Positions 21 through 63,181 of a stretch of 64,000 bases of DNA are shown one piece after another. The notes beneath the pieces are model-generated. The model ran no database searches and was not told the origin of the DNA. It saw only the letters and a program-made list of their open reading frames with translations. The stretch spans positions 2,108,001 through 2,172,000 of the forward strand of contig JBLDXI010000013.1 of assembly GCA_047495785.1 (NCBI GenBank), given 5' to 3'. Positions within the stretch are counted from its first letter, which is position 1, and the number at the start of each line of letters is the position of its first letter. This DNA comes from Lepidodermella squamata (lineage: Eukaryota; Animalia; Gastrotricha). Position numbers and translations under genes: made by a program.

Positions 21-767
21 ATGTACGCCAAGTTGGCAATCCTTGCTGTAGCTCTTGCCGCTGTCTACGCTGATAAAGGTGGCAGCAAGCCGGCTGTTTT
101 GACGGCTGCTGTTTTGCCGGCGCTCCCAGAAGGAGCTGCGCGGCCCCCCAAGCCAGAGGTGATCCCGCTCTCGAACGGAGGACGATGCTTCTGTGCCCCT
201 GAACCGCCGAAGCCCGATCAAGACGCAAAGCCCGTGGAAGCTCCGAAATCCAAGTCAGACGCTGCCAAGCCGGCCGAAGCTGCCAAGCCAAGCGACAAGG
301 GTGATACCAAGGCAAAGCCAACTCCTAAGCCCACCGATGGCACCAAGAAGGAGGAAGGCGAGAACAAGAAAAAGCCCACTGAGACTGACAAGAAGAAGCC
401 AGCAGCCGACACCGATAAGAAGTCGACTGATGAGAAGCCGAAGGCAGCTGAGACTGACAAGAAAAAGCCAGCTGCTGACACCGAGAAGAAACCTGCTGCC
501 TCTGGTGATAAGAAGTCTGCAGTAAAAGCCAATACTGAAACAACTGCTGACACCTTTGGTAAGGCTATTGCTATCGGAGAACCCCATCCGGGACCGCGCC
601 CTTGTGGACCGGGACCGCTGCCACATCCGCCAATTCCTGACGAGATTCTCAACGCTCCGGAATTGAAGGAGACCGACAAGTACGAATTCCGCCCGCTTTG
701 CTCCTGCTTCTTCCCCGCCGCCCAGAAGGCCTCAGCTGCTACTGCTGTTGCTGCTGCTTCTTCGTAA
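21..767 (+). CDS. Secreted cysteine-clasp family protein (class I, CxC...CxC) with K/D/E/P/A/T-rich loop
   Basis: 248-aa ORF; signal peptide MYAKLAILAVALAAVYA; N strand GGRCFC; charged repeat loop (KKPAADTDKK); C strand PELKETDKYEFRPLCSCFFP; AATAAA at ~838; paralog at 6496. Confidence 0.85.
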   Translation: MYAKLAILAVALAAVYADKGGSKPAVLTAAVLPALPEGAARPPKPEVIPLSNGGRCFCAPEPPKPDQDAKPVEAPKSKSDAAKPAEAAKPSDKGDTKAKPTPKPTDGTKKEEGENKKKPTETDKKKPAADTDKKSTDEKPKAAETDKKKPAADTEKKPAASGDKKSAVKANTETTADTFGKAIAIGEPHPGPRPCGPGPLPHPPIPDEILNAPELKETDKYEFRPLCSCFFPAAQKASAATAVAAASS

Positions 768-1148
768 TCATCTCAACGTGAGATATTCGCCGATGACTTT
801 ATATGCAATGATTTTGACTCCAAAAATGTTTCAGCCTAATAAACTCTGTGCTTCTGGATTTTTCGAAACCGAAAAAACATTGTCTTTTGTCTCCAAGAGT
901 TCGCTAAGACTAAGTAAACACCGTCATTATTGACTTGATTATTCTTGATGCGCCATCAAGTTGACAATGCAAGACGGTTCAAGCCCACCTTATCCGTCCT
1001 AATTCCTATTCTGAGCTAGCTATCCTATTCTAAGCAGGAGTCAGTTTAGTATAAAGCTTTTCCGAAATAACGAAAGGATTTCAGTGATTGAAATAAAAAC
1101 CCGTTGTGCCACTAGAATTATTCAATATTTTCCTACTTCATTTAGACA

Positions 1149-1613
1149 ATGATTCAATTAACTGTTTATATACTTGTTGCCGCTTTTGCTAACGAGTCAT
1201 TCGCCCAGCAAAGCAGCGACAGCGGAACTCGTCCAGCAATTGGGATCTCAGCTAACAACGGGCAACGATACCCACCAGTCGGCGCTCCGCCACCTCGTCC
1301 GCCGCCTAGCGAGGAGATTCAGCTGAAATGCGGCGCTAAATGTTTCTGCGACCAGTTATCAACGGGCAGCAACAACAACAACAACGCCGAGCGGTTTTCA
1401 TCAAGCAGCCGTACAGTGAAATCGGGGCCGCAGGGCAGTGACAACAGTCAAAGCGGATCGTCTCGGCCACAAGCTCCTCTGTCCCTGCCGCCTCCTCCGC
1501 CTCCACCTGCCCGTCCTCCGCGAGAAGTCACAGAGGCTGCCGAGTATAATAACAATTCATTCGACCTTCGAACTCGATGCTGGTGCTTCTTCCCGAAAGG
1601 AGACGCTTGCTAG
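1149..1613 (+). CDS. Secreted cysteine-clasp family protein (class I) with S/N/P-rich loop
   Basis: Signal peptide; EEIQLKCGAKCFC ... AEYNNNSFDLRTRCWCFFP; TATAAA at ~1050; near-identical copy at 45201. Confidence 0.85.
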   Translation: MIQLTVYILVAAFANESFAQQSSDSGTRPAIGISANNGQRYPPVGAPPPRPPPSEEIQLKCGAKCFCDQLSTGSNNNNNAERFSSSSRTVKSGPQGSDNSQSGSSRPQAPLSLPPPPPPPARPPREVTEAAEYNNNSFDLRTRCWCFFPKGDAC

Positions 1614-3944: not shown

Positions 3945-4921
3945 TATACGGATAAAAATAATTGCTGCTTGCTTATTTTACGTGACTGTTGCGGTTTTCG
4001 TCTATCCAAACGTTCGAGCGTGTGGACACGGAACTGTCGAAGAAAATCCTGAGGGGCCGTCAATTTGGCAAGTAAATGATAGATTTTACCTCCTCCCGTC
4101 ATTCCATACATTCCTCGCCATAACGATTAAAATTGACCAGGAAAAGCATTCAGCGCAAAAGTGAGAATACGAATCGTTAAAGTGTCTTTCTGAGACCCAA
4201 GCCAAGAAAAATCAGAACACAAAAAGTCAATTTTGCCTTGTCATAAAGAAACGATTTCTCGTTCGTGTCTCTCCGAAACATCGAACTCCAATGTGACTGG
4301 CGCGATGCTGGTTATGTCGGTCTTTTTGACTGGCACTGTTCCCGATGCCGAAGAATGCGCGATTTCGAGAATCCTCGTCTTCAGAAGAACTGCGTGAAAT
4401 TTATCTTAGGATCTTCAGATGTTTCATGGTATGGTTGTAGTGCAGTTGGGGTATACGGCAAATTTTCGGAGAAACAATTTTCCCCTTCAATCGATGGAGT
4501 CAAATATGGCTGCGAACGAGTCGGCGTTATCGAGGTCACTCAAGTGTCTATTCAAGGCGTTGATTTTTTATGTGACTGGCGCGATGCCGGTTATGCTGGT
4601 TCTACTAGCACCTTATCTAACACCGAGAATTCACGCAACGAGCTCGTACCTTGATTTCAATGACGAACTTCCTGGTCGTTGCTGATTTCGACTTTTGAAA
4701 ATTTCCATCTTAAAATGGTCACTTATCTTTTCTGAAAAAACTCTGTTTACTTTCAAACTCAATTCACCTGATGATGAAATCTGTATTGATTTCGAAACGT
4801 CGTGCAATGAAAACTATCTTAGTCTTTTGTAAAACTTGTAACATAGTTCAAAGTTCAATTTGGAAAACAGGAAGGCACCTCAAAAATAATAAAATACCTT
4901 GAAAACACAAACTTTATTTTG
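3945..4921 (+). pseudogene. Relic of the spliced clasp gene (exon 1 plus intron remnants, exon 2 missing)
   Basis: ...VYPNVRACGHGTVEENPEGPSIWQ|GTAAAT matches exon 1 at 45924/50433 but with ATA in place of the ATGs; intron segments match 46120-46480; acceptor TTTTGCAG is replaced by TTTTGAAC and no exon 2 follows. Confidence 0.7.
4762..4808 (+). ncRNA. Minimal type I hammerhead ribozyme motif (Penelope-like element end)
   Basis: CAC-CTGATGA-T-GAAATC-tgtatt-GATTTC-GAAA-CGTC-GTG: complete catalytic core, stem II, and very short palindromic stem III. Confidence 0.65.
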
Positions 4922-5967: not shown

Positions 5968-6495
5968 TTAAACCGTATCTTAAGTCAAAGCGGAAATTTA
6001 GACTTCGGTTTCCTAAGGTTTTTGGACCGGATTTGCACTATATCCCGGAAGGCTTTACCTGGCGCGCTGATTGTCTGGTTTACACGAATTTTACTGTAAA
6101 TAGCAATACTATTTGTCTCCGAAAATGTTTCAGCCTAACTCTAAATAAACTCTACGCTTCCGGATTTTCTGGATTTCAAGCGAGGTGATTCCGCAAAAAT
6201 GTGGGGGTAAATGTGTTTGCATAAATTTTTTGCGGTTTTGGGTTAGTCGATCCGTTGCATAAATATTACCTTGTCTTAAACAATAGGTTCTATTGTTTTT
6301 AACGTTCAAGGGTTCTTTTGAGAAATAGTTTTTTTGTGACCAGATTACACGAGTCATTTGGTTTCTAAGCTGCTGTTTGCGCAATGATTGTTGCCAAATC
6401 CAACTAAGCGCGACCATTGGGTTTATAAATAGGCGCGGGAAACACACTCGGTGGAAATATATTCCTATAATATAATATCATATCAGTAGAAAAAC

Positions 6496-7659
6496 ATGTA
6501 CGCCATGTTGGCAATCCTTGCTGTAGCTCTTGCCGCTGTCAACGCCGAACAGGTCGGCAGCAAGTCGACCGCGCCAGCAGCACCCCGGCCCTCCAAGTCA
6601 GAGGTTATCCGCCTCGCCAAAGGGGGCCGATGCATCTGCGAAGAAGAATCATCGGGGCCCGAGCAATTGCCAGAGGCAACGCCCGTGGAAGCTCCGAAAT
6701 CCAAGTCAGACGCTGCCAAGCCGGCCGAAACCGCCAAGCCTAGCGAGAAGGGCGATACCAAGTCAAAGCCAGCTGCTAAGCCCGCCGAAGGCGAGACCAA
6801 GAAGAAGCCAGAAGACAAGGCCGCTGAGACGAAAAAGCCAGCAGCCGGCACCGATAAGAAGTCGACTGATGAGAAGCCGAAGGCAGCTGAGCCTGACAAG
6901 AAAAAGCCAGCTGCTAAGCCCGCCGAAGTCGTCAAGAAGGATGAAGGCGAGACCAAGGAGAAGCCCACTAAGACTGACAACAAGAAGCCATACACATTGA
7001 AGGTCGCTAAGACTGACGGGAAAAAGACAGCTCCGAAATCCAAGTCAGACGCTGCCACGTCCGCCGAAACCAACAAGCCGGCCAACAGGTCTGGCGAGAG
7101 GGCCAAGGCAGACCACCATTCCAAGAAGGAACAAGCCGAATCGGAGGTCGCTATGACTGAAGGGAAAAAGACAGCAGCCAGTTTCCATCAGGGACCGTCT
7201 CCTTGTGACCCGCTGCCCCATCTGCCGCCGCTTCCCGAGGAGATCGCCAACGCTCCGGAATGCGAACAGGCCGGCAATTACCACCTCCGCCGCCACTGCT
7301 TCTGTTTCGTCCCCACAGATGATGTTGCTTCTGTTGCTTCTTCCTCACATCAGCCGTTCAACCTCGGCAAGTCAATGCAGAAAATCGCGCTCGCTAACCC
7401 TCCTTCCACGTTGACAAGAAAGCCTTCTTCTGCTACTACTACTCCTACTCCTACTAGAGGGAAAGTAGAAGAGATAGAAGAGAGGGAAAGGGAGAAGCCA
7501 GAGAGAAAGGAAGAAGCTCCTACTAGAGGGAAAGTAGAAGAGATAGAAGAGAGGGAAAGGGAGAAGCCAGAGAGAAAGGAAGAAGCTCCTACTAGAGGGA
7601 AAGTAGAAGAGATGGAAGAGAGGGAAAGGGAGAAGCCAGAGAGAAAGGAAGAAGCATAA
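6496..7659 (+). CDS. Secreted cysteine-clasp family protein (class I), paralog of 21-767, with insertion-derived charged C-terminal tail
   Basis: Signal peptide; GGRCIC ... NAPECEQAGNYHLRRHCFCFVP; TATAAAT at 6424; 5' UTR and 3' flank homologous to the gene at 21. Confidence 0.8.
   Translation: MYAMLAILAVALAAVNAEQVGSKSTAPAAPRPSKSEVIRLAKGGRCICEEESSGPEQLPEATPVEAPKSKSDAAKPAETAKPSEKGDTKSKPAAKPAEGETKKKPEDKAAETKKPAAGTDKKSTDEKPKAAEPDKKKPAAKPAEVVKKDEGETKEKPTKTDNKKPYTLKVAKTDGKKTAPKSKSDAATSAETNKPANRSGERAKADHHSKKEQAESEVAMTEGKKTAASFHQGPSPCDPLPHLPPLPEEIANAPECEQAGNYHLRRHCFCFVPTDDVASVASSSHQPFNLGKSMQKIALANPPSTLTRKPSSATTTPTPTRGKVEEIEEREREKPERKEEAPTRGKVEEIEEREREKPERKEEAPTRGKVEEMEEREREKPERKEEA
7448..7655 (+). 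repeat. 3 x 69-bp tandem repeat encoding PTRGKVEEIEEREREKPERKEEA
   Basis: Units start at 7448, 7517 and 7586; nearly identical. Confidence 0.9.
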
Positions 7660-23242: not shown

Positions 23243-23339
23243 CTAACACATGCTAAGAGACGACTTACACGAAAGTCACCCAGTGTTCGTTGATGTAAGC
23301 TGACTGAACTTGAACAGTAACAATATTAGAGGTAATTCA

Positions 23340-25222: not shown

Positions 25223-25266
<44 letters not shown>

Positions 25267-39999: not shown

Positions 40000-40005
40000 C
40001 AAAAT

Positions 40006-40149: not shown

Positions 40150-40171
40150 AGTAATAAGTGCTTTCCTGATT

Positions 40172-41364: not shown

Positions 41365-41370
41365 TAAACG

Positions 41371-42287: not shown

Positions 42288-42906
42288 ATGTACTGCATAA
42301 TCTTACTGGTAGTTCTTGTACAGTTAGTAAGTACAAGCTCTGGTTTCAGTTGCCTGAACGGTTCGACTACAGATGCTACGACAGTTGGAGGATGTGGTCA
42401 ATGCGCTGTAAGAATAGGATATTCATTAAAGAGCTTTCTTCTAAATGTCATGCTTGCAGGTTTCTGTAACCATCTCACGACCTTCGAAAGGCTCCGAAAT
42501 AAAATTTGCCTACAATTGCATCCTAGCCACCTATGTACCAACATGTATAGAAAGTCGGACTAAATATCCTGTGGTTACAGAAGAGATAAATTATGATGAC
42601 CCTGGATGGGCTTTATTCTGTGTCTGTTGTTCCGCAGGGTGTTCAAATAGCAACGACTTTTGCAACCCTACAGCAACGCTGTTAGATACCAGAATTACGG
42701 CTTCGAACTCCTACACACCTTCTTGGCTCGCTTGGAGCGATGCAAAATTGCAGAGTCAATGGACTGCATGGGCGTCTTCCGCGTGGTCCCGCTCCGGTTG
42801 GTCGACAAGTTGGTCGACCAGCTGGTCGTCGTCTACCCCAAAGTCCACGGGTATAAAAACTAAGGCCACAGTGATCACTGTGATTATGACACTATTTTCA
42901 TTCTAA
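42288..42906 (+). CDS. Spliced Ly6/uPAR three-finger-like GPI-anchored protein (exons 42288-42407 and 42460-42906, 188 aa)
   Basis: 52-bp phase-0 GTAAGA...TTGCAG intron joins two ORFs in frame; signal peptide, 10 mature Cys ending CVCC...C......CN, W/S/T-rich stalk, hydrophobic C-terminal tail. Confidence 0.65.
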
Positions 42907-44809: not shown

Positions 44810-44947
44810 TGATGATAGGCCTACATGGGGCTTCGCCCCCAACTGTCCTGTTAACGATTGGTGGCCAGCGCATTCCACAGGTAAATGAGGTGAAATATCT
44901 CGGTATCACGATTACGACGAAACTGTCCTGGGACCGTCATCTGGATT
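44810..44947 (+). mobile_element. Short RT fragment of the same LINE family as 18873-23242
   Basis: Matches ~22017-22148 (HGAS.PTVLLTIGGQR.PQV.EVKYLG.TITTKLSW). Confidence 0.85.
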
Positions 44948-45200: not shown

Positions 45201-45671
45201 ATGATTCAATTAACTCTTTATATACTCGTTGCCGCTTTTGCTACCGAGTCATTCGCCCAGCAGAGCAGCGACAGCGGAACTCGTCCAGCAACTGGGAATT
45301 GGAATTCAGCTAATAACGGGCAACGATACCCACCAGTCGGCGCTCCGCCACCTCGTCCGCCGCCTAGCGAGGAGATTCAGCTGAAATGCGGCGCTAAATG
45401 TTTCTGCGACCAGTTATCAACGGGCAGCAACAACAACAACAACGCCGAGCGGTTTTCATCAAGCAGCCGTACAGTGAAATCGGGGCCGCAGGGCAGTGAC
45501 AACAGTCAAAGCGGATCGTCTCGGCCACAAGCTCCTCTGTCCCTGCCGCCTCCTCCGCCTCCACCTGCCCGTCCTCCGCGAGAAGTCACAGAGGCTGCCG
45601 AGTACAATAACAATTCATTCGACCTTCGAACTCGATGCTGGTGCTTTTTCCCGAAAGGAGACGCTTGCTAG
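45201..45671 (+). CDS. Secreted cysteine-clasp family protein (class I), recent duplicate of 1149-1613
   Basis: Protein identical to the 1149 copy from SANNGQRYPP to the stop; differences only near the N-terminus. Confidence 0.85.
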   Translation: MIQLTLYILVAAFATESFAQQSSDSGTRPATGNWNSANNGQRYPPVGAPPPRPPPSEEIQLKCGAKCFCDQLSTGSNNNNNAERFSSSSRTVKSGPQGSDNSQSGSSRPQAPLSLPPPPPPPARPPREVTEAAEYNNNSFDLRTRCWCFFPKGDAC

Positions 45672-45923: not shown

Positions 45924-46952
45924 ATGAGGACAAAAATGATTGTTGTTAGCTTATTTTACGTAATTTTCGTCGTTCCAAATGTTCGAGCGTGTGGACAAGC
46001 AGCAATCGAAGAAAATCCTGAAGGGCCGTCAATTTGGCAAGTAAATGACTTGATTTTTCCACCTTAAATTACCTTAGCGAATAAAATTACCTGCATGCAG
46101 TGCAAAAGTTGATGAAACTTTAAGGTGTCTTTTCTGAGGCACAATACCAGAAAAATCAGCACCTGTTTGGAACATTCATATTTTGCCTTGTCGTAAGAAG
46201 CTGAAAGATGACTGATGGCCCATTGTGAGATTTCAAGTTTAAGAACAATTATTGATGCATTTGCTAACAGCTCCTGTGATATATGCAAGGCTATACTGTG
46301 TTGATTTTTCATGGATTTAGATTCAAGTACCATGAGTAAACCAAAAATACCGAAAACGCTGACTTATCCAGAATTAGTAGTAGTTCAATCTGGTACCTTT
46401 TCTTGGGCTGTGCCTCTTGGCAGTAAAACAGGCAGGCACCGCAAAAATGATAAAATATCTTGAAAATACTCAAAGTCTATTTTGCAGGGCATGCCATCTG
46501 CGCATATGCACGGAGGGCAAACGGAAACGACGGATTCCCATGTGCCCCGCCCCTCGAAACCACAGAAGTTACAAGCTGGAGAGGTGGTTTCATGCTATTG
46601 CCCGCCTAAGACACGAAATCCTAACAGCAGTGAACATGAAGCTTGGCCGCAACCGGTCGATCCCGCTATGATCCCATTTCTGGCCGTTCCAGGGACTAGT
46701 ATGGCTTCGCGCCAAGCTAAAAGCAGTGCCCCAGCAGCTTCACCTATTGCTTTTCATGCTAGACCGTCTCTAAAGTCTTTGTGGAGCATGTTAACTATGC
46801 TTATGACTTTCGACGAGCAGAATGATATCAATGCCGCCGAAGAGTCGACGAATCCTGAACTGGAACTTCGTGAGCCCTGCGTCTGCTACGCCTGGAAAAA
46901 CATGCATAACTCCCCAGATCAAGGCATTCCAGGCGTTCCAGCCTGGGGCTAA
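45924..46952 (+). CDS. Spliced secreted cysteine-clasp protein (exons 45924-46040 and 46488-46952)
   Basis: Exon 1 MRTKMIVVSLFYVIFVVPNVRACGQAAIEENPEGPSIWQ supplies the signal peptide; phase-0 GTAAAT...TTTTGCAG intron; VSCYCP ... EESTNPELELREPCVCY; ends PAWG*. Confidence 0.8.
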
Positions 46953-48286: not shown

Positions 48287-49165
48287 ATGACTGTTTTATT
48301 GCTGGCAACTCTCGCGATTCTCGGCGCTTCTGGCGTTCATGGCAACCATGCTGCTGTAAGCCAAGAGGGTGTTGCTGCAAGTCATCAACCTGCCCATGTT
48401 GACGCCATGCCTGCTCACATGACGATGAAGATGAACCCACAGGCTGCATCGAACTACAGATGGCATCCCGACGGCAAGAACTATACGGAAAAGTTCAGAT
48501 CTGATGAGATTTATTCATGCTACTGTCAGCCGAAACAGGCAGGTGACCCGCAATCATTCAACAGCATGAGACCAACTTTCCAACAACAACATCAAGGCCG
48601 TCCGGGCAGCAGTCCCGGCAGCAGTCCCGGCAGCAGTCCAGGCAGCAGTGCTGGTAGCAGTCCCGGCAGTAAGCCGACTAACCTAGGCTCTCGACCGATT
48701 AGCCAAGCTAGCCGACCGGGTGTGCCTGCTGTGCAAAATATGATTGGCCAAGCGTCGGCAGGAGGGAGGGCCAGGCGCCAAGCTGCAAGAAATTCCCGAT
48801 CGGCTTCATCTGTTCCTGGCCCAGCGAATGCTGCGGGTGCTGCGGGCCACGGTGCTGGAAATTGGGGTCCTCAAGTTGCAATCAATTCCGTGCCTTCACC
48901 CGATGGTATTCCTTCTGCGGGTGTTGCGGATCCTCCTGGAGCTGCAGGCAATTGGGGTCCTGCTTATCCTGGTGCTGCAGGACAAAGTGCTGGCCCTGCT
49001 TACCCCTATACTCCCTTGTATACTTTGGACGACTTTAAGGCTGCCGCGAAGGAGTTCAACAACGTCGAAGAGGCGAAGAACCCTGAACTGGAGCAACGCG
49101 TATGCGCTTGCTACCTCAAGAAATCGGCTATTGCAAAACACGACGCTGCATCAAAAAACCAGTAA
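48287..49165 (+). CDS. Secreted cysteine-clasp protein (class I) with PGSS / A-G-P-rich loop
   Basis: Signal peptide; SDEIYSCYCQP ... EEAKNPELEQRVCACY; RARR site in the loop. Confidence 0.85.
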   Translation: MTVLLLATLAILGASGVHGNHAAVSQEGVAASHQPAHVDAMPAHMTMKMNPQAASNYRWHPDGKNYTEKFRSDEIYSCYCQPKQAGDPQSFNSMRPTFQQQHQGRPGSSPGSSPGSSPGSSAGSSPGSKPTNLGSRPISQASRPGVPAVQNMIGQASAGGRARRQAARNSRSASSVPGPANAAGAAGHGAGNWGPQVAINSVPSPDGIPSAGVADPPGAAGNWGPAYPGAAGQSAGPAYPYTPLYTLDDFKAAAKEFNNVEEAKNPELEQRVCACYLKKSAIAKHDAASKNQ

Positions 49166-49898
49166 AACGAGCTTATTTCTAGCTTTTTTGGTGAAAGATT
49201 TAATATGAACACTATTAATTATAACCGCATATGAAATAATGCAGAAAGTTGCGGACCTCAATAGTTTTATTACCTGAATATGCCTTCGAAGAATGTTTTC
49301 TGTCCTTTTCCACTTCCATATAGGTAGCAACGCTATTGTGGACATCTTTCGATAATGACGAAGCATCATTGAGACAACTTTTGACTCAAAAGTGTGTATC
49401 ATGATCGAAATAAACAGGAAACTTTCCTCAACATTTGAATATTTGACAAACAAAACCTGGGTTGAAACTCGGAGTATTCCATCTTAGAAATTCGCCAACA
49501 AGATTTCGGCAATTAAATTTAGTTCATGCACTGGAAACGAATTAAACTCAGCAGTCTCGATTCAGGCATCTGAAAGATAGATCCAGGTTCAGCCTCAAAG
49601 ATCCCCTTTATTAGCCGTTTTTTTAACCATTCAAAGCACCATTATTAACCTGATTTCTATGTGCTGAGCATCTTGTTGAGAGGCTTTATCGGACCATTTT
49701 ATTAGGTCGATAGCGTGCCGTCAACCGAGAAGTTCAAATTTGAACCCGGAAACCACAGAGAATTTTCACAGACCCCTAACTCGATTCAAAATTAAGGCTT
49801 TTCGGATTTGTTGAGCTATCTGTTCAGCCTTGTTGAAGTCTTAAGTTTCGGGTTGTCGGATAATTTCAGTTTAAATGGTTGACTTTGATCCAATGCAT

Positions 49899-50165
49899 AG
49901 GTGATTCCGCTCTCGAACGGAGGACGATACCCTGAACCACTGAAGCCCGGTCAAGACACAAAGCCTGTAGAAGCTCCCAAATCCAAGTCAGAAGCTGCCA
50001 AGCCGTCCAAAGGCACCAAGCTGAGGCAAGCTGAGGTACCAAGCCAGCTAGTATGCCCGATTGCATCCTCTGAGAGAAGTCGCAGCGGCTATCAAGTAAT
50101 AAAGACAATTCATTCGACCTTCGCACCCAATTATGGTACCTCTTCCCGAAAGGGGGCGCTTGATA
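49899..50165 (+). pseudogene. Chimeric clasp pseudogene (5' part from the 21-type gene, 3' part from the 1149-type gene)
   Basis: VIPLSNGGR-[CFC deleted]-PEP.KP.QD.KPVEAPKSKS joined to a degraded copy of ...AATTCATTCGACCTTCG...TTCCCGAAAGG; no signal peptide. Confidence 0.75.
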
Positions 50166-50432
50166 GAAGAGGTGGAGAAAACACCGGCTTAGCCCTTATT
50201 ATTTCCCTTAGCAAGACAATTGTCGATAACTAGGTATTTCTAGACGATAGACGAGGCGTTATTAGGGCAATTCATTTTTTTTGTGATCAAGTGTGATTGT
50301 CCTCAACTGAGATGTCTATTGTCTTCCGGTAACGCTCGAATGGTAAGAGTTTGACGAGTAATTTATTGACAGAATAAATAAGGAATATATCAATTTTCCC
50401 AACTGATCCAATTTACGCTAAATAATTTAAAA

Positions 50433-53400
50433 ATGATTGTTAGCTTATTTTATTCTGTGTCTGTCGCGATATTCATCGTTCCAAACGTTCGAGCGTGTGG
50501 AGATGGAGCAATCGAAGAATATCCTGACGGGCCGTCAATCTGGCAAGTAAATGATATGATTTTGGGTCATATTTGGGTCTCCTTTTACCGGAACCAAATA
50601 CTTTGCTGTAGCGGAACCAAATTTTACAATTTTCGGTGACCTGAACTCATTTTTCGGATATTTCTTGGGTATCAAACATAGTATCAAGATTGGCCGCAAC
50701 TATTCTAATCTAAGAGCCACTAAATTCAGCGAAATATTCTCTATAATTGTTCAATTACCGTAACGGGTCCTAACTTTGGACAAAACACCTTTTTTAATTT
50801 AAAAAAATTCGGTTTTCGTCTAAAAAAATGGAAAAAAATATCCAAACCTCCGCCCAAGGAAGCTGCGTGGACAGGTGAAGTTTGGAAAATTTACTCACCT
50901 TGATTTTAAAAAAATTGGTAAAGAAACCTCCAAAATTTGGACACTCGTTCCCAAATTTGGACACCTCATTCGCATATGCTAATTCGACCTTACACACATT
51001 TTATTTCTTGTTGCGCAATTTTCCTCGTGTTTTTAAAGGCGACTTTTGTAGCCGCGCGCTTGAGACTAAAATAATGCTACCGATAGGATTCACTCATCGT
51101 CAGATTTAATGCAGATGTACGCAATACCAATTATACACCAGGATCTTAATACCGTTAATGAACCATGAATCTTCTCGAAACTATGATAAACCAGGTGAAA
51201 ATGTCTCTGAAGCACCGAGTCTCATTTAGAAAGTAGACGGAGGGATATCAGTTTGAGGTTAAACCATGGGTTGAGGTTTGAATGAGTCGTGGAGTTTCTT
51301 TATCGCTGAACTATTGACATTTTTTACCGATAGTGAACTGTCATTTGTCCCATGGTACGTGCTGTTCACCTGTTTAATTAAAGCTGGCGCCGTCGGATTT
51401 GTATTCGGATACATTATTATTCCCTATGCTCTCTAGCCAAAATCATGAAAGCATAGCCTAGGCCGGGAGTCATTAAGCTAATTCCAAGGTTCTATAGGCC
51501 TTCCCACAAACTCGTTTCTTTTTTTTTCTCATGCATATGCGAGTAAACACATACACATACAGCAAAAAGCATACAGCCCCCGTTCACAAACTGATTTCTT
51601 TTCTCCTTGTATGTGATTTTTTTCTGACCGAAGAGGCCACTGAAAAAAGGGATGGCGGCACGTCGAATCGAACCCTTGACAACTTCGCACACATCGATAA
51701 TTATATCGACTTGGCTAATCCGTCAAGCTTAAAGTGTGACCTATAAATTAGGCTTTAAGGCAAAAAATTCATTGATAAATGCGTCAACAAGTCGAAGATT
51801 AATGATTCATGCCCGCACTTGACCCAGAAAACGCGGATAGCTTTTATAGATATTAGCAACCAATAATTAGGCTTTTTATAGCGACAGATAAATACGATGG
51901 CAACATAGTGCAGTTGCTATTGACCGGCCTGTTCAACGGGCGGACGGGGTTCGAGCCCCATCGAAGTTGGTCATTTTTTCAGCGGCCTCTTCGGCAAGAA
52001 AAAAAATCACATACAGGGAGAAAAGAAATCAGTTTGTGAACGGGTCTGTATGCGATTTTTTTCGCCAACACATACGACCCCGGCAATAAACTTATTACAA
52101 ATCACATACACATTTTTTCATACGAGTATGTGCGCAGACCTTATCAATGCGATGCCATTCTTTTCAAAAACTGACAAAAAGCATACATTTCGTTTGCATA
52201 TGCATAGAGATAAAAATATCATTAAAAGTGTCCAAATTTAGAGGCTAAATTCAAAGTCACCTGTATCAAAATTGGCTTGTCCTTCTGCCGAGATTTTTTT
52301 ACAGAATTTAGTTTAGGTAAATCCCCATTTGCAAAACAAATTTCAGCCCCAACCGTTCACAGGTGAGCATTTGGCAAGGGGGGTCCCAAAACACCTTTCT
52401 GAGTGATCGAGCTTCGGCGATTTTTCGCAAATCGATAGTACATGAAAGTATTGGCAAATTTGGTACCGTTGGAAAGCCCACGAAGGGAGCTATTTTTCAG
52501 TGAAATTTCTAAACTTTTATCAGTTATGCACAAATTGATATTTGGGGCTAAAGCTCAAAGTGTCCAAATTTGGGGTGTCCAAATTTAGGGCGCGTTACGG
52601 TATTGTTCAATTTAGAACAATAATTTGAAGTTTCAGATTGTTCAATTAAGAATGCTTCGCCCAAAATTCGTGGTTCGTATTTAAAAAATGACTCATGGAG
52701 TTTTTCGACTTAGGCTCATAAAAATGCGCAATTGGTTCCGCTTAAAGCTATTCTGTTTGATTTTAGCACCATAAATAGGGAGTAAAATTTACCAGAAAAA
52801 GCATGCCTTGCATAAGTGGATGACAATTTAAGGTGTCTTGCTGAGACTATGTAAAAATCAGCACGCACCCGGTTGGAAAATCCGATTTTGCTTGCCGTAA
52901 AGAACCTGAAAGATGGCTGATCGCTCAATTTGTCCTCGTCGGGACGAGATTTTAAACTTCGGATCATTGAGATATTTCTTAGGTTGACCCTTTTTAGGCT
53001 AATTTAGGATATTCTGCATCTCATGGCAGAAGAAATCAGGCGCCGCAAAAATAATAAATAAACAAGTTTAGGAGTCTGTTTACATTTAATTAAACACAAA
53101 CTCTATTTTGCAGGGCATGCCATCGGCGCATATGCACGGAGGACACACGGGAATGACTGATTACCATGTGCCCGGCCCGTCGACAATACAAAAGTTACAA
53201 GCTGGAGAAATGGTTTCGTGTTACTGCCAGGCGAAATCATCAAATTCTGGCAGCGGTGGAAACGGTCTAGCTGGTGGGCCAAATGAGAACGAAGCCGCTA
53301 TTTGGCAAAATTGGATGGTTCCAGGGACTCATATGGCTCGGCGCCAAGCTAAAAGCAGTCCCCAGGCGGCTTCAGCTGCTGCTGTTCCTGCTGGACATTC

Positions 53401-53605
53401 AACGGGTAGATCTCCGATGATTTCGTGGAGCATGGTAAACAAGCTCATGGCTGCTGACGCGCAGAGCGAGATCAAGTCCGTCGAAGAGTCGACAAATCCT
53501 GAACTGGAACTTCACGAGCCTTGCGTCTGCTACGCCTGGAAAAACATGCGTAACGCCCCAGATCCAGGCGTTCCAGGCATTCCAGGCGTTCCAGCCTGGG
53601 GCTAA
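50433..53605 (+). CDS. Spliced secreted cysteine-clasp protein (exons 50433-50546 and 53114-53605), paralog of 45924
   Basis: Exon 1 MIVSLFYSVSVAIFIVPNVRACGDGAIEEYPDGPSIWQ|GTAAAT; acceptor TTTTGCAG ending at 53113; VSCYCQ ... EESTNPELELHEPCVCY; ends PAWG*. Confidence 0.8.
50756..52602. mobile_element. Non-autonomous TIR element inside the intron
   Basis: TIR TACCGTAACG.G.CCTAA.TTTGGACA; flanking direct repeat TTGTTCAAT at 50747-50755 and 52603-52611; internal inverted repeat ~51570-51625 / ~52000-52052. Confidence 0.8.
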
Positions 53606-55228: not shown

Positions 55229-55963
55229 ATGACAGTTTTATTGCTGGCAACGCTCGCGATTTTCAGCGCTTCAGGCGTTTGTGGCAATAGCGTTTATGGC
55301 AATGCTGCTGTTAGCCAAGAGGGTGTTGTTGCAAGTCAACCAGCCCGTGTTGACGACATGCCTGCTTTCATGACGATAAAGAACCCGCAGGCTTCATCCA
55401 ACAACAGAGACAGCAATAAGAAGCCAGTCACGGACACGTACAAATCTGATGAAATTTTTGTATGCAAATGTATGACGAAACAGCAGCAATCATTGAACAG
55501 TGGCATGAAACCAACAATCCAACAACAGCAACAAGGCCGTCCGGTCAGCAATGGTAACAAGCCGACTATTAACCTAAGCGGTCGACCGAATAATAATAAT
55601 AATCAAGCTAGCCGACCGGGTCAGGACAAACCTAATACTATGCAAAGTGTGCAAAATATGGCCAGTCAAGCAGGTAGGTCCAGGCGCGAAGCAGCAAGCA
55701 ATTCCGGGGTTTCATCTTTTCCTTTTCCTCCTGCGGGTTTTTCTGGCGGTAGCAATTCGGGTGCTACAGCGGGTTCTTACCCTTCCATTGGGCGTATGCC
55801 TCCAATGAGCGAAAATATGGGCGACATGATGGCTGCCATGCAGGAGGTTAACAACGCTGAGGAGGCGAAGAATCCTGATCTGGAAAAGCTTTTCTGCGCT
55901 TGCTTCATCAAGAGATCGATTGTTGCAAACCACGCCGCTGCATCAAACAACAACCGGCAGTAA
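55229..55963 (+). CDS. Secreted cysteine-clasp protein (class I) with Q/N/S/M-rich loop, paralog of 48287
   Basis: Signal peptide; SDEIFVCKCM ... EEAKNPDLEKLFCACF; RSRR site; flanks homologous to those of 48287. Confidence 0.85.
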   Translation: MTVLLLATLAIFSASGVCGNSVYGNAAVSQEGVVASQPARVDDMPAFMTIKNPQASSNNRDSNKKPVTDTYKSDEIFVCKCMTKQQQSLNSGMKPTIQQQQQGRPVSNGNKPTINLSGRPNNNNNQASRPGQDKPNTMQSVQNMASQAGRSRREAASNSGVSSFPFPPAGFSGGSNSGATAGSYPSIGRMPPMSENMGDMMAAMQEVNNAEEAKNPDLEKLFCACFIKRSIVANHAAASNNNRQ

Positions 55964-57405: not shown

Positions 57406-57837
57406 ATGATCAAGCCCATCGTAGTTTTGTCAATTTTACCCCTAATAATTTGCTATGTCACTTTCATATTGGCCGAAGAAAGGGACATTCGGCCTCGCCC
57501 GAGGATGGACCAGAATGACAACAACATGACGGTTAATTGGAAGTTCAAGAAACAATGCTCATGTTTCTGCCCCGAAATGCCAGCGGCGATGGGGAGGATG
57601 ATGAACCGAACAATGACTAACCAAACTAACCAAACCTCACGAATGGAAGGTATCAGGGCGGCACTTGGGCAGCGTCGAGGCGGCCGTGGCCTTTGCCCGG
57701 TTGGTATCATGGCCGTGGCCAATTTCATCCGGCGAAATCAACCCCCAATCAACTCAACGGCTGATTTTCAAACGGATCCAGCTAAAAACGACATGGGTAT
57801 GGCCTGTGTTTGTTCCTGTGCCAAATCTGCCAACTAA
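57406..57837 (+). CDS. Secreted cysteine-clasp protein (class II, CxCxC...CxCxC)
   Basis: Signal peptide; NMTVNWKFKKQCSCFCP ... ADF...MACVCSC; AATAAA at ~57872. Confidence 0.85.
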   Translation: MIKPIVVLSILPLIICYVTFILAEERDIRPRPRMDQNDNNMTVNWKFKKQCSCFCPEMPAAMGRMMNRTMTNQTNQTSRMEGIRAALGQRRGGRGLCPVGIMAVANFIRRNQPPINSTADFQTDPAKNDMGMACVCSCAKSAN

Positions 57838-58118
57838 GATGAATAACCAATTGAAGCTACTTTCGCGATGAATAAACAAAGAACCGCAGCAGTCGTGTTC
57901 ATTTTTTGGCCAAACTACTTAGGGCAAATCGAACAAAAGCAATGTAAAAAATACAAGGGAATCCTTTGTACTGTCTATATAATGAGATTACCGGTGGTGA
58001 AGTGTTTACTCAGCGCTGAGGAACTTCCCCTTTCATAACAAGGCACCACACCTATTTCAAAGTAGCGGTATAAATAGGCCGGGTTTTCCAGAATTTATCA
58101 TCTTAAAGTTTATCAGAC

Positions 58119-58433
58119 ATGGCATACAAATTGGCTCTTTTAGTGGCTCTGGCTGCCACGATGCTGTTCGTTGGCTTCGAAGCTGCTCCCCGTGGTGGCG
58201 GTGGCGGCGGTGGGCCCGGCGGACCCGGCGGACCTTGCGGACCCCACGGTGGCCAGCCGCCCAACATCACTTGGACAAAGTATCCGAAGACATGCAATTG
58301 TTATTGCGGCACAAACATGCCGACGCCTCCCCAGGGTGAACCGCCACTCCCGACTGTTATCAGCAGTGATTCCGATTTCAGCACGACAGGCAGCAACAAG
58401 ATCCTGAAGCCTTGCATTTGTTCCTGCCCGTAA
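58119..58433 (+). CDS. Secreted cysteine-clasp protein (class II), compact Pro-rich loop
   Basis: TATAAAT at 58069; signal peptide; NITWTKYPKTCNCYC ... SDFS...KPCICSCP*. Confidence 0.85.
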   Translation: MAYKLALLVALAATMLFVGFEAAPRGGGGGGGPGGPGGPCGPHGGQPPNITWTKYPKTCNCYCGTNMPTPPQGEPPLPTVISSDSDFSTTGSNKILKPCICSCP

Positions 58434-59178
58434 AAAACCATCATGACTGATTGCTGACTACATTATATATAGTTTCATATGATAGTTTTATATGATGGTT
58501 TCAGTGAAATACAGAAGTCTCGCTCGAGGTTGAACTAATTTTAGCTCTAAGTTCGAATAAAACAGCAATAGAAATAAATTTAACATATTTAAAAAAATAA
58601 ATGAATATTCATGAGGTTTTAATTAAAATCAAGAATATAGTTAACTGCTCATTTTTCTCTGATGTTTTGGCGCTAATGTAAAATGTCCCCGTTTCAAGAC
58701 ACCTCATGAATATATTCATATTCCTCAAGCTAACTTTCATCCGAGATTTCAAGGGCCCATCAATCTGGTCAGTTTTTGAACGAAAATAAGGCATCATTTC
58801 GCACGCGAGCGTATAACTAAAGTCCAACATGCGGTTCATTTGATTTCCACTGCAACTAATTTTTTTGTAATAATAAACTCTGCCCCAATTTAATGCTTTT
58901 TTGTCCGGCCGAATTAGCTGAAAAACGTTAATTTTCTGGAAAAAACCTTGTTCATGTTTGCAGAGGCCTTTTTGTTTAGGTTGAATGAGTTTCTCACCTT
59001 TTTCAACTGGATTTCTTTGTTTGAAACGAAAAAAAGCCACGCAAAAAAGTTGAGCGTGCTTGCGTTGGCTGGTTAGGTGTCAAAGACCCAATTTACTCCC
59101 AGGGTTTACGCTAGCCTATAAAATGGGCGGTAGGGTTATTCGCCGACATCGCTCTCAGCTTTCATCTAGAACTGTAAA

Positions 59179-59799
59179 ATGTTCAAGGCAATCTTGTTTT
59201 CAGCTTTGACAGCGGCTATCTGCCTCGCTGCCGATGATGACTCGGCACAACCTCCCCGGCCTCCTATGGGCATGCCTGGCAACATGACTGTCAAGTGGAA
59301 TCTGAAGAAGGAATGCACGTGCTTCTGCCCTGACAATCCGATGATGCAGATGATGATGAACCATTCGGCTAATAACAGTGGCAATCCTCAAGGCCCTCCT
59401 CAAGGTCCTCCTCCAGAAGTCCTTGCCTTTATAAATAGTTCGGGAGGCCCTGCGGCTCTTCTTGCACGTCTCAATGCTTCGGGCCCAGGAGCAATGGATC
59501 CTGCGGCTCTTCTTGCTATTCTCAATAGAGCTGGAGGTCCGGGAGGCCCTGGAGGTCCTGGTGGTGCTGGAGGTCCTGGTGCTCGTGCAGGCCCAGCAGG
59601 GGGACCTGGTCGTGGAATGGGTCCAGGGGGCCCTCCAATGGGTTGCCCGAACGGAATGATGGCCGTTATGGATTTTCTGCGCCGTAACCACCCGCCAGTC
59701 GACGAAACCGACGACTTCCCGAAAGACAACACCAAGTATGATAGGAACGTACCCTGCGTCTGCGCTTGCCCGAAAACTGATGCTGACGCCACCAACTAA
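59179..59799 (+). CDS. Secreted cysteine-clasp protein (class II) with GPG/Ala-rich loop
   Basis: TATAAAA at 59117; signal peptide; NMTVKWNLKKECTCFCP ... DDF...VPCVCACP; AATAAA at ~59835. Confidence 0.88.
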   Translation: MFKAILFSALTAAICLAADDDSAQPPRPPMGMPGNMTVKWNLKKECTCFCPDNPMMQMMMNHSANNSGNPQGPPQGPPPEVLAFINSSGGPAALLARLNASGPGAMDPAALLAILNRAGGPGGPGGPGGAGGPGARAGPAGGPGRGMGPGGPPMGCPNGMMAVMDFLRRNHPPVDETDDFPKDNTKYDRNVPCVCACPKTDADATN

Positions 59800-60079
59800 A
59801 TACTGAACCTTCCAAAAGAGGATTTTTGGCTATCAATAAAACTCTTGATCAGTAAATTCAGGTTAATGGCGTTTTGATATAACAATAGGGTTGTCGTGCC
59901 GTGCCAATGACTTTATTGGCCCATCTTTCTAGTCGTGAGCAAAAACTACGCTTTTTTGTGTTTGCTCAAGTCATTAGCCGTGTTTACAAGGTAATCGACC
60001 CGAAATAAGCTGGTATATAAATACCGGGTTTCCCATCCAGAAATTATTCCCCTATAGCAGCGATTTCCTAATTATTATC

Positions 60080-60655
60080 ATGTCTCAGGCCGTTATGACG
60101 GTTTTTGCCGTGGTCGCGTTATTCGCGATCGCTGAAGCTCAGTGGGGCGGTAACCAGAACAGCAACCAGAACAGGCAAGGCCCGCCTCAGAATTTAAAAT
60201 GGTTGAAGTTCAAGAACACCTGCACGTGCTTCTGCACCGATCCTCCCATAACTGAACAACAAGGCGGCCCACCAAGCTTTGGCGGTAACAACCAATTCAA
60301 GCAAGCCGGAGGTCGTCAGAACCAGGGCGGCCAGGGTGGTCAAAGCGGCTTCGGCGGCCCAGGTGGCCAAGGTGGCTTCGGTGGCCAAGGTGGCCCAGGC
60401 GGCTTTGGTGGACCAGGTGGCCAAGGTGGCCAAGGTGGCTTCGGCGGCCAAGGTGGCTTCGGCGGCCAAGGTGACCAAGGTGGCCAAGGTGGCTTCGGCG
60501 GACCAGGTGGCCAAGGTGGCTTCGGCCGCGGACCACCACCCCATCCCCCACCTCTGAACCCTCCGAACCTTAGCGAGGAGTTCAGCAGCCAGAGCAACAC
60601 TGTCTACAAGCCGTGCGTCTGCGCTTGTCCAACTGGAAGTGGAGTCTCAGCCTAA
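60080..60655 (+). CDS. Secreted cysteine-clasp protein (class II) with GGQ/GGF/GGP repeat loop
   Basis: TATATAAATA at 60014; signal peptide; LKWLKFKNTCTCFC ... EEFS...KPCVCACP; AATAAA at ~60727. Confidence 0.88.
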   Translation: MSQAVMTVFAVVALFAIAEAQWGGNQNSNQNRQGPPQNLKWLKFKNTCTCFCTDPPITEQQGGPPSFGGNNQFKQAGGRQNQGGQGGQSGFGGPGGQGGFGGQGGPGGFGGPGGQGGQGGFGGQGGFGGQGDQGGQGGFGGPGGQGGFGRGPPPHPPPLNPPNLSEEFSSQSNTVYKPCVCACPTGSGVSA

Positions 60656-62047
60656 GAGAAATCGATTTAATGTCAAAACTGTCTTTATCTCCGCCCTACA
60701 ACCCATTGTCGGAAAATTGGCTTGGAAATAAATGACTAACCTTGGCATCGTGCGATTTTCGATTTCAATTTATTTCATTTACCTTTAACATTATGTACCT
60801 TTTTCATCAATTTTTTTCCGAACTCAAAAAATAGTGAAAAATCGAGCAATTATTCGAGGGAGGCAAATAGAACGTCACATCATCACTTTGGTCAAGCCCA
60901 TAATTTGATATGAGCAGCTTCCGAAAGGCTTGCCAGGTTGAACTTCCTGAACCTTTTATGCAGAAGTGATTCCGTAGTCGGAAAAGCCATACCTATTAAT
61001 TTGAGGCCATATTATTTTCCAGGCTTCAATAACCTGCTTTTCAACCGCCTGGCTATTATTCGAGACTCGAGACGGGCTATTCAAAACCTTTGGACCCAGT
61101 ATTATGGTTTTTTGGGCTATTATTCGAGGGGTATCTTCTTTGAAGTACGATACTATTCGATAATACGGTAATTTAAAGATGAGAAGAAATAAGGGGCCAC
61201 TTTGTCTAAAAAAATTTGAAAATTTATCTGAAACTATATCAGTAGCTGAGAATACGATTCAGGTTTTCAGATCACCGTCTTTTTTGCGGTAGAATTTTTC
61301 TAGTACTTTCCGGAAATTCTATGTAATTACTGTATTGCCGAAGTCTCCAGGTATCGCATTATCTTTTTTGTTATTTTCGGGTAAGATTTTTTTTAGAGAA
61401 TTTAGGTAGAATTAGACTTAGTAAAGTTAGAATTAGTAAAGGTAATTTATGCGTCTTGTCAGTTGGCACAAAGGCTACAATAGGAATGAATCAAATTCCT
61501 CGAAAGTCTCTTCCCTATTAAAACATCCAAGAGGAACCACTGAAATAAGCTGGATCTTACGCTGAAATTAAATTGTCGTTTCAGTTTAAAGGGCAGGGAG
61601 TGAATTAATCCTTTTTGAGCTTGGCGTCTCATTACAATTCTTATTATTCAATCTGAAATTTTTTAGATATATTAACAGCCATCAAAAATTTACAGAATAT
61701 AATTTTTTAGCACCAAGTTTTTTAAGTTTCGTCGAGAATCCTTCATTTCTTAATTTCAAACAACACATCGTCTTAATTGTTTTGAAATCTTCAGGCCTAC
61801 CTATGTGTTGGCTACTGCCGCAACTCCAATTTTGCTGTGGTCAGATAATGCTTTCAAGAACGAGAGAGAGAGAGAGAGCCGCAATTGTTCTCTCCACGTT
61901 GAAGCGCGAGCATGATTTTTCAAGCAAAAAAAAGATAAGCAACGGGGGCGTCGCTTGAGGGACTAAACAAGATGAAAACGGCAACTAATTAAAAGCGGCA
62001 AACAGCTACTACAACATCGCTCTTCATTCTACTTGGAGTAGTAAAAA

Positions 62048-63181
62048 ATGAAAATAATCGCATTGTTAGCCTTTCTCGGCGCCGTTGGTGCCATCCCCGA
62101 GTACCAGAAACGCATCCCTCATGGCGATCAAGTCATTCACCCTTGTGACCCAACGAAACTATGGGGCCCTGTCGGCCACTGGGGACCGAATAGTTACGGA
62201 AAAACGTCCCTGAACCCGTTTGGCAATGATTTCAAAAATGCTGGCCTTAATTGGCGAGCTGTCTGTAACCTCGACAGTGACGGCGATGGTTACACTAATG
62301 GCGAGGAGCTGGGTGACCCAGACTGCCGCTTCGATGGCACCCCAGCCTCACTTGACCTCTATTACACCGAGTACACGAACCCGGGTGTCTGCGAGCCGGT
62401 CAACTACCCTGGATGTAAGGACATCAACTCAGCCTTCCTGCTAGCTAACAACCCGGAATGTGCTGCTGCGATCAATGAAAAATGGCCTGGCCAGGGGTTC
62501 AGCTGGAAATTAGGCGCTGCGGTGTGGAAGAGTAACCGGACGGCCACGCGCCCGCCGGCTCGTGACATCGCGAAAAATCTCGCAGATGCTAACAAACCAG
62601 CCCCTGCTCCAGCGCCAGCAAACCGGAACCAACCAGCGCCCGCGCCCAACAATCGAAACCAGCCGGCTCCGGCACCTAACGGAAACCGGCCTGCCCCGGC
62701 TAGCAACAGAACGGCGCCCGCCCCTGCACCAGCAAACCGGAATCAATCAGCCCCGGCTCCTGGAAACCGTAACCAGCCAGCTCCAGCCCCAGCGCCACCG
62801 GCCGGCACAGCGCAAGGCATCCGAAATAACAACCAACCAGTCCCGGGACCAACTAATCGTAACCAGCCAGCTCCAGCTCCAGCTTCGACGAGCAACAGGA
62901 CTGGCCCTGCGCCAAGGCCTGCTACTAACCGGAACCAAACAGCTCCGGCTTCCGGCCCAGCACCCAGCGGTAGTGTTGGAACCTGGAAGCTTCGCAAAGA
63001 TTGCTCTTGCTTCTGCCCGCGTGGCCCTGTTGATCCCGTTAATAATTCTATATTGAAGCTGGCAGGCGAAGGAATTAGGATTGGAACGCCAAGCTCGGAT
63101 TTTTCTCCTCGAACCGATAGAGACTCGCCCATCTATCCTTGTGTCTGCGCCTGTACGAAGGCTGGACTATGGACCCAGTGA
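62048..63181 (+). CDS. Temptin-like domain + PAPAP-NRNQ linker + compact cysteine-clasp domain
   Basis: Signal peptide; YQKRIPHG...PC...W..VGH...NPFGNDF..AGL.W...CNLDSDGDGYTNGEELGDPDC (temptin signature); C-terminal TWKLRKDCSCFCP ... SDFS...YPCVCAC. Confidence 0.85.
   Translation: MKIIALLAFLGAVGAIPEYQKRIPHGDQVIHPCDPTKLWGPVGHWGPNSYGKTSLNPFGNDFKNAGLNWRAVCNLDSDGDGYTNGEELGDPDCRFDGTPASLDLYYTEYTNPGVCEPVNYPGCKDINSAFLLANNPECAAAINEKWPGQGFSWKLGAAVWKSNRTATRPPARDIAKNLADANKPAPAPAPANRNQPAPAPNNRNQPAPAPNGNRPAPASNRTAPAPAPANRNQSAPAPGNRNQPAPAPAPPAGTAQGIRNNNQPVPGPTNRNQPAPAPASTSNRTGPAPRPATNRNQTAPASGPAPSGSVGTWKLRKDCSCFCPRGPVDPVNNSILKLAGEGIRIGTPSSDFSPRTDRDSPIYPCVCACTKAGLWTQ

Follow-up and report, generated by a model that had tools for sequence, protein, structure and literature searches.

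In a 64,000-nucleotide (nt) stretch of the genome of the gastrotrich Lepidodermella squamata (contig JBLDXI010000013.1, positions 2,108,001 to 2,172,000 of the forward strand; hereafter, the window), 13 open reading frames (ORFs) most likely make up a tandemly duplicated, lineage-restricted cluster of secreted-protein genes with a two-part cysteine 'staple'. Each deduced protein consists, in this order, of a signal peptide, an N-proximal cysteine strand, a low-complexity loop and a C-proximal cysteine strand. We propose, with a probability of roughly 0.5, that these proteins form a cross-linked extracellular material by means of the two-part staple, the loops setting the properties of that material.

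A cluster of secreted proteins with two cysteine strands

An earlier note, made from the sequence of the window alone, had listed these 13 genes; we found all of them at the coordinates that it gave, on the + strand and with paired cysteine strands. Its wider statement that every host gene of the window lies on the + strand holds for the 13, but 'every' is not provable, although no further ORF of the window has a Pfam-recognisable host domain. Similarly, a signal peptide is predicted for each of the 13 proteins as the note had said, but the contiguous ORFs of g46482 and g53108 do not contain one. In both cases a conserved upstream exon provides it and joins the ORF in frame, and all 13 proteins are therefore predicted to be secreted. 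This exon is present in the window as three copies that differ by 3- and 12-nt indels and end in the donor CAA|GTAAAT; the introns measure 447 nt in g46482 and about 2.57 kb in g53108.

Eight genes (g21, g1149, g6496, g45201, g46482, g48287, g53108 and g55229) form class I, with C-x-C at both the N-proximal and the C-proximal strand. The other five, which are adjacent (g57406, g58119, g59179, g60080 and g62048), form class II and have exactly two C-x-C-x-C motifs apiece; the entire six-frame translation of the window has 14 such motifs, 10 of them in these genes. The C-x-C pairs of class I sit in modules of about 25–30 residues that can be aligned nearly without gaps. The N module is short, relatively basic and of β type, and its end is C-x-C in class I and C-x-C-x-C in class II; the C module is short and acidic and ends in the same cysteine motif as the N module. 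When hidden Markov models (HMMs) of the four module types were run against the six-frame translation, they matched nothing but these ORFs and some decayed relics; the architecture is thus non-random. The proteins, of 104–387 amino acids (aa), contain between 4 and 12 cysteines, and six or seven members have odd, unpaired cysteines additional to those of the putative ladder described below.

The loop between the two strands measures 35–219 aa among the 13 genes and its composition shifts from paralog to paralog, as the earlier note (with a range of about 35 to about 220 aa) had described. The main residues are, depending on the paralog, K/P/A/E/D, S/P/N, A/G/P/S, S/N/Q/G, M/A/R, G/P/A, G/Q/P/F or P/T/S. 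Stretches of the loops are mini- or microsatellite-like tandem arrays with units of 9–69 nt, indicating that loops grow by slippage; indels also contribute to their evolution.

Relatedness of the modules

The class II modules are mutually obvious, and an HMM built without g62048 recovered the N module of this gene with E=2.6e-4. To the remaining groups we applied a permutation test that scores position-specific similarity outside the cysteine columns and is weaker than a profile-profile comparison. Subclasses Ia and Ib were clearly related (z=5.5 in the N and 3.5 in the C module), and Ia and Ib taken together resembled Ic with z=2.8 and 2.7, respectively. Classes I and II were likewise similar in the N module (z=2.9, p=0.004) and in the C module (z=3.3, p=0.001). 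These sequence comparisons lend moderate support to the assignment of all 13 genes to one family. Common descent through tandem duplication is the simplest reading, albeit not proven, because the genes share the same order of parts and the same strand, and are physically adjacent.

Proposed pairing of the two cysteine strands

The earlier note had described a modular clasp that holds interchangeable loops. Two conserved cysteine modules with an interchangeable loop between them are indeed present, but the pairing of the strands as a disulfide ladder is weakly supported, by the sequence register, the charges of the modules, structural models, the Temptin fusion and published precedents. Since the cysteines of a strand would all face one side, no bond within the strand should be possible and a partner strand would be required.

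The likeness between classes I and II appeared in a single register, in which the class I C-x-C is matched, in class II, to the last two cysteines at the N strand and to the first two at the C strand; no other register was significant. In an antiparallel ladder, the last two cysteines of the N strand and the first two of the C strand are the two rungs closest to the loop. This inner-rung register is therefore what an antiparallel ladder leads one to expect, and class II would then be class I plus one outer rung; a parallel arrangement would predict a first-with-first register. Additionally, the N module carried a higher net charge than the C module in all 13 genes, with values in class II of +2 to +3 versus 0 to −3.

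AlphaFold2 was run on monomers and its models were read for secondary structure. In the model of the class II core (g58119; 62 aa, alignment of five sequences), the only two strands predicted are the two C-x-C-x-C stretches, and the class I core (g1149, 112 aa) was modelled as a sheet of three strands, both C-x-C strands among them. In this second model the predicted local distance difference test score (pLDDT) is about 70 in the C-x-C blocks, and the loop stays under 50. The class II module is compact (60–75 aa) in g58119 and occurs as a fused C-terminal unit in g62048; that it moved as a unit in the latter argues that both strands belong to one folding or assembly unit.

A class II module fused to Temptin

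Gene g62048 (62048..63181, + strand, 377 aa) encodes a Temptin_C domain, a linker and a class II module. Residues 15–113 (nt 62090–62386) match Temptin_C (PF24784) with E=1.8e-26 and 92.9 bits (cut-off 27), covering positions 3–97 of the 98 of the profile, and they include the calcium-site block D-S-D-G-D-G-x-T-N-G-E-E-L-G-D-P common to the retrieved proteins P0001–P0014, with which conserved cysteines are shared as well. A P/A/N-rich linker of roughly 190 aa is followed by the module at residues 303–377 (nt 62954–63178), which spans 75 aa with its strands 41 aa apart. The closest retrieved Temptin relative is 43% identical; the nearest ones are metagenome or read-assembly proteins, and one of the relatives is a diatom entry. 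None of the 14 retrieved relatives has the paired C-x-C-x-C module or the linker with the module, and two of them have one isolated C-x-C. This arrangement, as deduced from the sequence, suggests that the class II module is an autonomous anchoring unit. In the zebra mussel, Temptin-like genes are among the most mantle-specific and highly expressed, and in Aplysia temptin belongs to a secreted protein complex; by analogy, these precedents would fit a secretory-epithelium context.

Proposed assembly and its alternatives

We propose the following model. In the oxidising secretory pathway, and after removal of the signal peptide, a basic N strand would align antiparallel with an acidic C strand, and the two would be locked by a disulfide ladder of two rungs in class I or three rungs in class II. 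Pairing of the two ends within a chain would close the low-complexity segment as a covalent loop; pairing of complementary ends of different chains would give head-to-tail chains or networks, which the unpaired cysteines of six or seven members could branch. The loops would set the chemistry of the material (polyampholyte, mucin-like S/P/N, Gly-rich and elastomer-like, or Met/Gln-rich), which may be a co-secreted matrix, glue, mucus or coat, and the Temptin fusion would tether a calcium-binding globular domain into it via its class II module. It is also possible, although we lean somewhat against it, that the two strands constitute an insertion-tolerant 'split cystine-ladder' mini-domain, closing within or between chains and serving as a universal covalent handle by which nearly any low-complexity sequence, or a globular domain such as Temptin, would be joined into a single secreted composite.

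Several results weigh against the proposed staple and a common origin for it. Both AlphaFold2 models are of low confidence, with a mean pLDDT of 53.5 for class II and 56.6 for class I and predicted template modelling scores below 0.3. In recent paralog pairs, the ratio of nonsynonymous to synonymous substitution rates (dN/dS) is similar in modules and loops (about 0.5 each), and the modules are not clearly more constrained; the pair g46482/g53108 is an exception, with 0.29 in the modules versus 0.64 in the loops. The CXCXC-bearing Anopheles proteins CTL4 and CTLMA2 form one promiscuous disulfide only, multiple ones between cysteines set close together on neighbouring strands being limited, it is said, by steric hindrance (PMC6811590). 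Finally, hhalign gave class I against class II a probability of 1.3%, which is not significant, and HMMs trained without a subfamily missed that subfamily, as happened between Ia/Ib and Ic in both directions.

The likeliest alternative, although we regard it as unlikely, is that the cluster encodes a fast-evolving secreted cocktail for host defence or signalling (antimicrobial or pheromone-like), in which the cysteine strands do no more than stabilise a small cationic head resembling a β-hairpin, as in protegrins and θ-defensins, and the loops, instead of building a material, act as spacers or active peptides. Tandem duplication, pseudogenes and dN/dS values of 0.5–0.66 are typical of immune and reproductive effectors, the N modules of class II are basic, and the Temptin domain fused to one member is known from a water-borne pheromone complex of a mollusc; moreover, the Gly-rich loops recall glycine-rich antimicrobial peptides. 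Nevertheless, the C modules are acidic, and the loops reach 219 aa and are mostly non-cationic, with acidic, mucin-like and polyampholyte types among them. Peptides regularly flanked by dibasic processing sites were not seen in the 13 sequences, and the entire architecture is closer to that of structural secreted proteins.

Next in plausibility, and also unlikely, is that three or four families (Ia/Ib, Ic and II), related locally at most, lie together and that their split clasp is convergent or superficial, given that C-x-C by itself is frequent. The hhalign probability and the failure of the subfamily-less HMMs to connect Ia/Ib with Ic both favour it, and this failure means that a single common scaffold is not proven. 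The single scaffold that the earlier note had assumed for classes I and II finds moderate support in the permutation similarity of both modules but not in the profile comparisons. Set against separate families are the position-specific similarity outside the cysteines, which extends to both modules in every pair of groups (z=2.7–5.5), and the order of parts, the strand and the adjacency in one cluster that all groups share. Were the two-strand design convergent, its repeated evolution would still point to one mechanism.

Searches for known relatives

The suggestion that the modules do not belong to a named domain was confirmed across the collections searched. Neither the cysteine modules nor the whole proteins matched any Pfam-A family at E<=1 beyond low-complexity noise, Temptin_C aside. 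Sequence searches of the PDB and Foldseek searches with both models returned nothing meaningful, a word-index protein search with g58119 gave no match, and an exact look-up in a collection of 15 billion proteins found none of 10 family proteins and none of 10 mobile-element proteins. Patterns of class II and of the class I C module had matches in JGI metagenome contigs, none of which was confirmed by tblastn, and a literature search on the literal motif strings yielded irrelevant matches only.

Among 1.84 billion protein representatives, the class II profile had a sole match, P0015 (E=5e-15), which we rejected as a tandem-repeat artefact. It is an ORF of 808 aa on a 131-kb ENA metagenome contig (L003:10001-12427) with ten copies of a repeat of about 80 aa containing W…C-Y-C, and its E-value is misleading because partial matches to the ten repeats were summed. 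We estimate that roughly 45 bits are needed for significance in a search of this size, and each module scores 36–43 bits against the HMM of its own family; consequently, only fairly close relatives would be detectable.

As regards known cysteine motifs, C-x-G-x-C, as in cystine-knot and C-terminal cystine knot (CTCK) proteins, does not occur in any of the 13 proteins, and the conserved cysteines of class I number four only. Metallothioneins typically have more than 15% cysteine, arranged in CC, CxC and CxxC clusters, and are cytosolic. It is very improbable that the proteins are secreted binders of Cu(I), Zn or Cd, in the manner of metallothioneins or Ctr1, that would use cysteine thiolates and Met/His-rich loops and form no disulfides. 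CxC and CxCxC are classic motifs of metallothioneins and copper sites, and methionine makes up 12% and 8% of two loops, with M-M-x-M-M-M among the runs; yet only these 2 of the 13 loops are Met-rich, the number of cysteines is far below that of metallothioneins, CC and CxxC are absent from the 13 proteins, and the signal peptides route them to an oxidising compartment.

Evidence for functional genes

The signal peptides look cleavable and conform to the −3/−1 rule. A TATA box lies 50–99 nt upstream of the ATG in five genes, and AATAAA or ATTAAA occurs at most 300 nt past the stop codon in 11 genes. Among paralog pairs, dN/dS ranges from 0.20 to 0.66, and in the class II paralogs synonymous sites are saturated and the modules retained. 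Both TGC and TGT are used in 7 of 10 cysteine columns, yet every intact gene has cysteine there. The cluster is a real family of clustered orphan genes, not annotation noise, and its proteins are fast-evolving overall. That the ORFs arose by chance in repetitive, low-complexity DNA is scarcely credible: several loops are tandem repeats, overlapping ORFs exist in other frames and on the opposite strand, and the proteins are absent from the public protein collections searched, but the genes have signal peptides, TATA boxes and poly(A) signals, dN/dS is below 1, the spliced signal-peptide exon is conserved with indels in multiples of three, and cysteine codons vary synonymously at an invariant residue, unlike in a decayed pseudogene.

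Several 5' regions share short motifs. The core promoters of g58119, g60080 and g6496 (about 58050–58118, 60010–60079 and 6420–6495) have in common TATAAATA and, after it, a CGGG-type block and GAA(A/T)TTAT. Genes g59179 and g62048 (59140–59178 and 62010–62047) have a common leader, ACATCGCTCT(C/T)CA, about 30–40 nt upstream of the ATG. Such sharing across classes hints at common regulation or at common ancestry of the 5' ends.

Individual genes and relics

The following genes and exons are all on the + strand. The first three class I genes are g21, g1149 and g6496. Gene g21 (class Ia, 21..767, 248 aa) has C-F-C at residue 56 and C-S-C at residue 227, separated by 168 aa of K/P/A/E/D loop in which there is a single additional cysteine, and AATAAA lies 71 nt past its stop codon. 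Gene g1149 (class Ib, 1149..1613, 154 aa) has an S/P/N loop of 76 aa, a TATA-like box at −99 and two extra cysteines, one of them four residues ahead of the N strand and the other C-terminal. Gene g6496 (class Ia, 6496..7659, 387 aa), with TATAAATA at −72, has a K/A/E/P loop of 219 aa and extends 117 aa past its C strand, unlike its paralog g21. Its E/R/K-rich tail behind the C strand is encoded by a 69-nt unit repeated 3.0 times with 99% identity (7448–7655), which is a very recent expansion.

Gene g45201 (class Ib, 45201..45671, 156 aa) is 97% identical to g1149, with a dN/dS of 0.20. The class Ic gene g46482 consists of an exon for the signal peptide plus 17 residues (45936–46040; donor CAA|GTAAAT) and a second exon (46488..46952; acceptor TTTTGCAG|) that encodes C-Y-C, a P/A/S loop of 92 aa and C-V-C. 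Its paralog g53108 (67% amino-acid identity, dN/dS 0.51) has its signal-peptide exon at 50433–50546, with the same donor, and its second exon, with the same acceptor, at 53114..53605. The other two class Ic genes are g48287 (48287..49165, 292 aa), with an A/G/P/S loop of 192 aa that contains a 12-nt repeat in 5.8 copies, and g55229 (55229..55963, 244 aa), with an S/N/Q/G loop of 141 aa.

Within class II, g57406 (57406..57837, 143 aa) has the strands C-S-C-F-C and C-V-C-S-C around an M/A/R loop of 78 aa. Gene g58119 (58119..58433, 104 aa) is the most compact; its P/T/S loop measures 35 aa, its seventh cysteine is located upstream of the module and TATAAATA lies at −50. Gene g59179 (59179..59799, 206 aa), with TATAAAA at −62, has a G/P/A/N/M loop of 142 aa and a seventh cysteine, and g60080 (60080..60655, 191 aa), with TATATAAATA at −66, has a loop of 126 aa that is 40% glycine (GGQ/GGF) and made of 9-, 27- and 54-nt repeats. 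The loops of g57406 and g59179, otherwise dissimilar, both carry the seventh cysteine (…C-P-x-G…) and, between it and the C module and directly ahead of the latter, the helix-like stretch M-A-V-x-x-F-(I/L)-R-R-N-x-P-P; this element may be an additional site of interaction or branching.

The cluster contains at least three decayed copies, and it has grown by the duplication of multi-gene units. A third signal-peptide exon of the g46482 type (about 3958–4071, + strand) is decayed, with ATA for ATG, and retains the donor GTAAAT. At 6149–6259 (+ strand), an N-module relic of class I (…C-G-G-K-C-V-C…) with no gene around it was detected by the HMM of the Ia and Ib N modules (E=5e-6). A chimeric pseudogene at 49890–50240 (+ strand) joins an Ia-type N part to an Ib-type C part; it has no start codon, its frame is broken and all four ladder cysteines are replaced or deleted.

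Mobile elements and other content of the window

ORFs are sparse in the window, which has a G+C content of 35–52%, and no tRNA genes or Rfam families were found in it. A degraded non-LTR retrotransposon of the long interspersed nuclear element (LINE) type occupies 18873–23729 on the + strand, with an APE endonuclease, RVT_1 and several frame breaks. Between g1149 and the relic signal-peptide exon there is an ORF of 170 aa (1878–2390) that has no Pfam match and resembles, by eye only, the C-terminal tail of a LINE ORF2.

A Maverick/Polinton-like element of about 18.4 kb lies at 24805–43254, with GAAT on both flanks and terminal inverted repeats of 196 nt (24805–25000 and 43059–43254) that are 89% complementary. 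Its ORFs, of 100–1413 aa, are uninterrupted. They include an integrase of 516 aa on the − strand, which combines a parvovirus-type phospholipase A2 (PLA2)-like domain, an rve core and a chromodomain, as well as an A32-like packaging ATPase and a 237-aa ORF matching phage tail-fibre repeat families. The best relatives of the integrase, metagenome or read-assembly proteins, are 58–69% identical, and that of the coral Oculina patagonica is 50% identical. Together with the Temptin domain, the LINE and this element would by themselves mark the window as eukaryotic DNA, probably of an aquatic invertebrate. The 1413-aa ORF was not confirmed as a polymerase, an endonuclease VII-like stretch being its sole match. 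The left arm of the element contains a 214-nt repeat in 1.9 copies (25389–25791), a perfect 26-nt repeat in 5.9 copies (26111–26264) and an imperfectly duplicated block of about 600–700 nt (26728–28251).

Short dispersed repeats with 88–96% identity (813–946 and, inverted, 44442–44574; 22016–22148 and 44812–44946) tie together three places: intergenic DNA within the first group of genes, the LINE region, and the sequence immediately upstream of g45201. Probably they are pieces of a further mobile element that took part in the segmental duplications.

Significance of a proposed two-ended staple

Glues, mucins, silks and the matrices of shells and cuticles are usually made of orphan proteins that are difficult to annotate. 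Whole-protein profile searches miss families of the present kind because two modules of 20–25 residues flank sequence that cannot be aligned. If the ladder is real, short alternating-cysteine strands would supply a rule, readable from sequence, for the assembly of low-complexity secreted proteins, and the split ladder, if true, would be a new class of extracellular assembly domain and a natural counterpart of engineered staple and tag systems. The cluster would also offer a natural comparative series for the folding and polymerisation of staples, with two versus three rungs and loops of 35–219 aa and varied chemistry, and its compact modules (about 60–75 aa) could become small covalent clasps that tolerate large inserts.

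Comparison with known systems

In θ-defensins, paired C-x-C-x-C strands form three disulfides between antiparallel strands, and in protegrins paired C-x-C strands form two. The spacing of cysteines in the cluster is identical to that in both peptide groups, but these are cationic antimicrobial peptides of 16–18 residues whose strands are joined by a tight turn or by cyclisation of the backbone, whereas here the strands are 35–219 residues apart, the proteins measure 104–387 aa and the C module is acidic; homology is absent.

The disulfide staple of the nematode cuticle mucin DPY-6 is a C-x-C-x-C-x-C strand that forms an antiparallel intermolecular ladder (bioRxiv 10.64898/2026.02.24.707637). 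It resembles the proposed staple of the cluster in having alternating cysteines on one β-strand, with thiols on one side, in a secreted low-complexity protein, and it serves in the assembly of an extracellular matrix. However, DPY-6 has four cysteines on a single N-terminal strand, homodimerises and is a single-copy giant restricted to nematodes, whereas the cluster comprises a multigene set of small proteins with two or three cysteines on each of two strands; C-x-C-x-C-x-C does not occur in the 13 proteins. With our proposal, the 'disulfide staple' would no longer be confined to a single nematode protein but would include a system with two ends and many paralogs.

In cnidarian minicollagens, CPP-1 and cnidoin, terminal cysteine-rich domains (CRDs) flank an interchangeable core of collagen, polyproline or elastomer, and the proteins polymerise by disulfide exchange to form a secreted structure (PMC4863159, PMC6910907). 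The order of parts is like that of the cluster, with a signal peptide, a brief cysteine domain at the N terminus, a low-complexity core and a short C-terminal cysteine domain. The CRD folds alone, in contrast to the ends proposed here, which would pair with each other, and its motif, C-x3-C-x3-C-x3-C-x3-C-C, has no occurrence in the 13 proteins.

The lepidopteran and trichopteran silk components SP150, Muc-12 and Muc1 are secreted, fast-diverging, repetitive low-complexity adhesives or mucins of which a short C-proximal CXCXC is the sole conserved part (PMC11385562, PMC9432349). They differ in being very large and multi-exon and in that the motif is described for their C terminus only, and the profile search of 1.84 billion proteins detected no homology between them and the cluster. 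The Anopheles proteins CTL4 and CTLMA2 are joined through an N-terminal CXCXC, aided by complementary charges of the partners (PMC6811590); they differ from the cluster in being C-type lectins with one motif per chain.

Secreted low-complexity proteins with short cysteine-bearing ends that cross-link them are thus a general kind already known, and it is the two-ended, alternating-cysteine design of the L. squamata cluster that is unusual.

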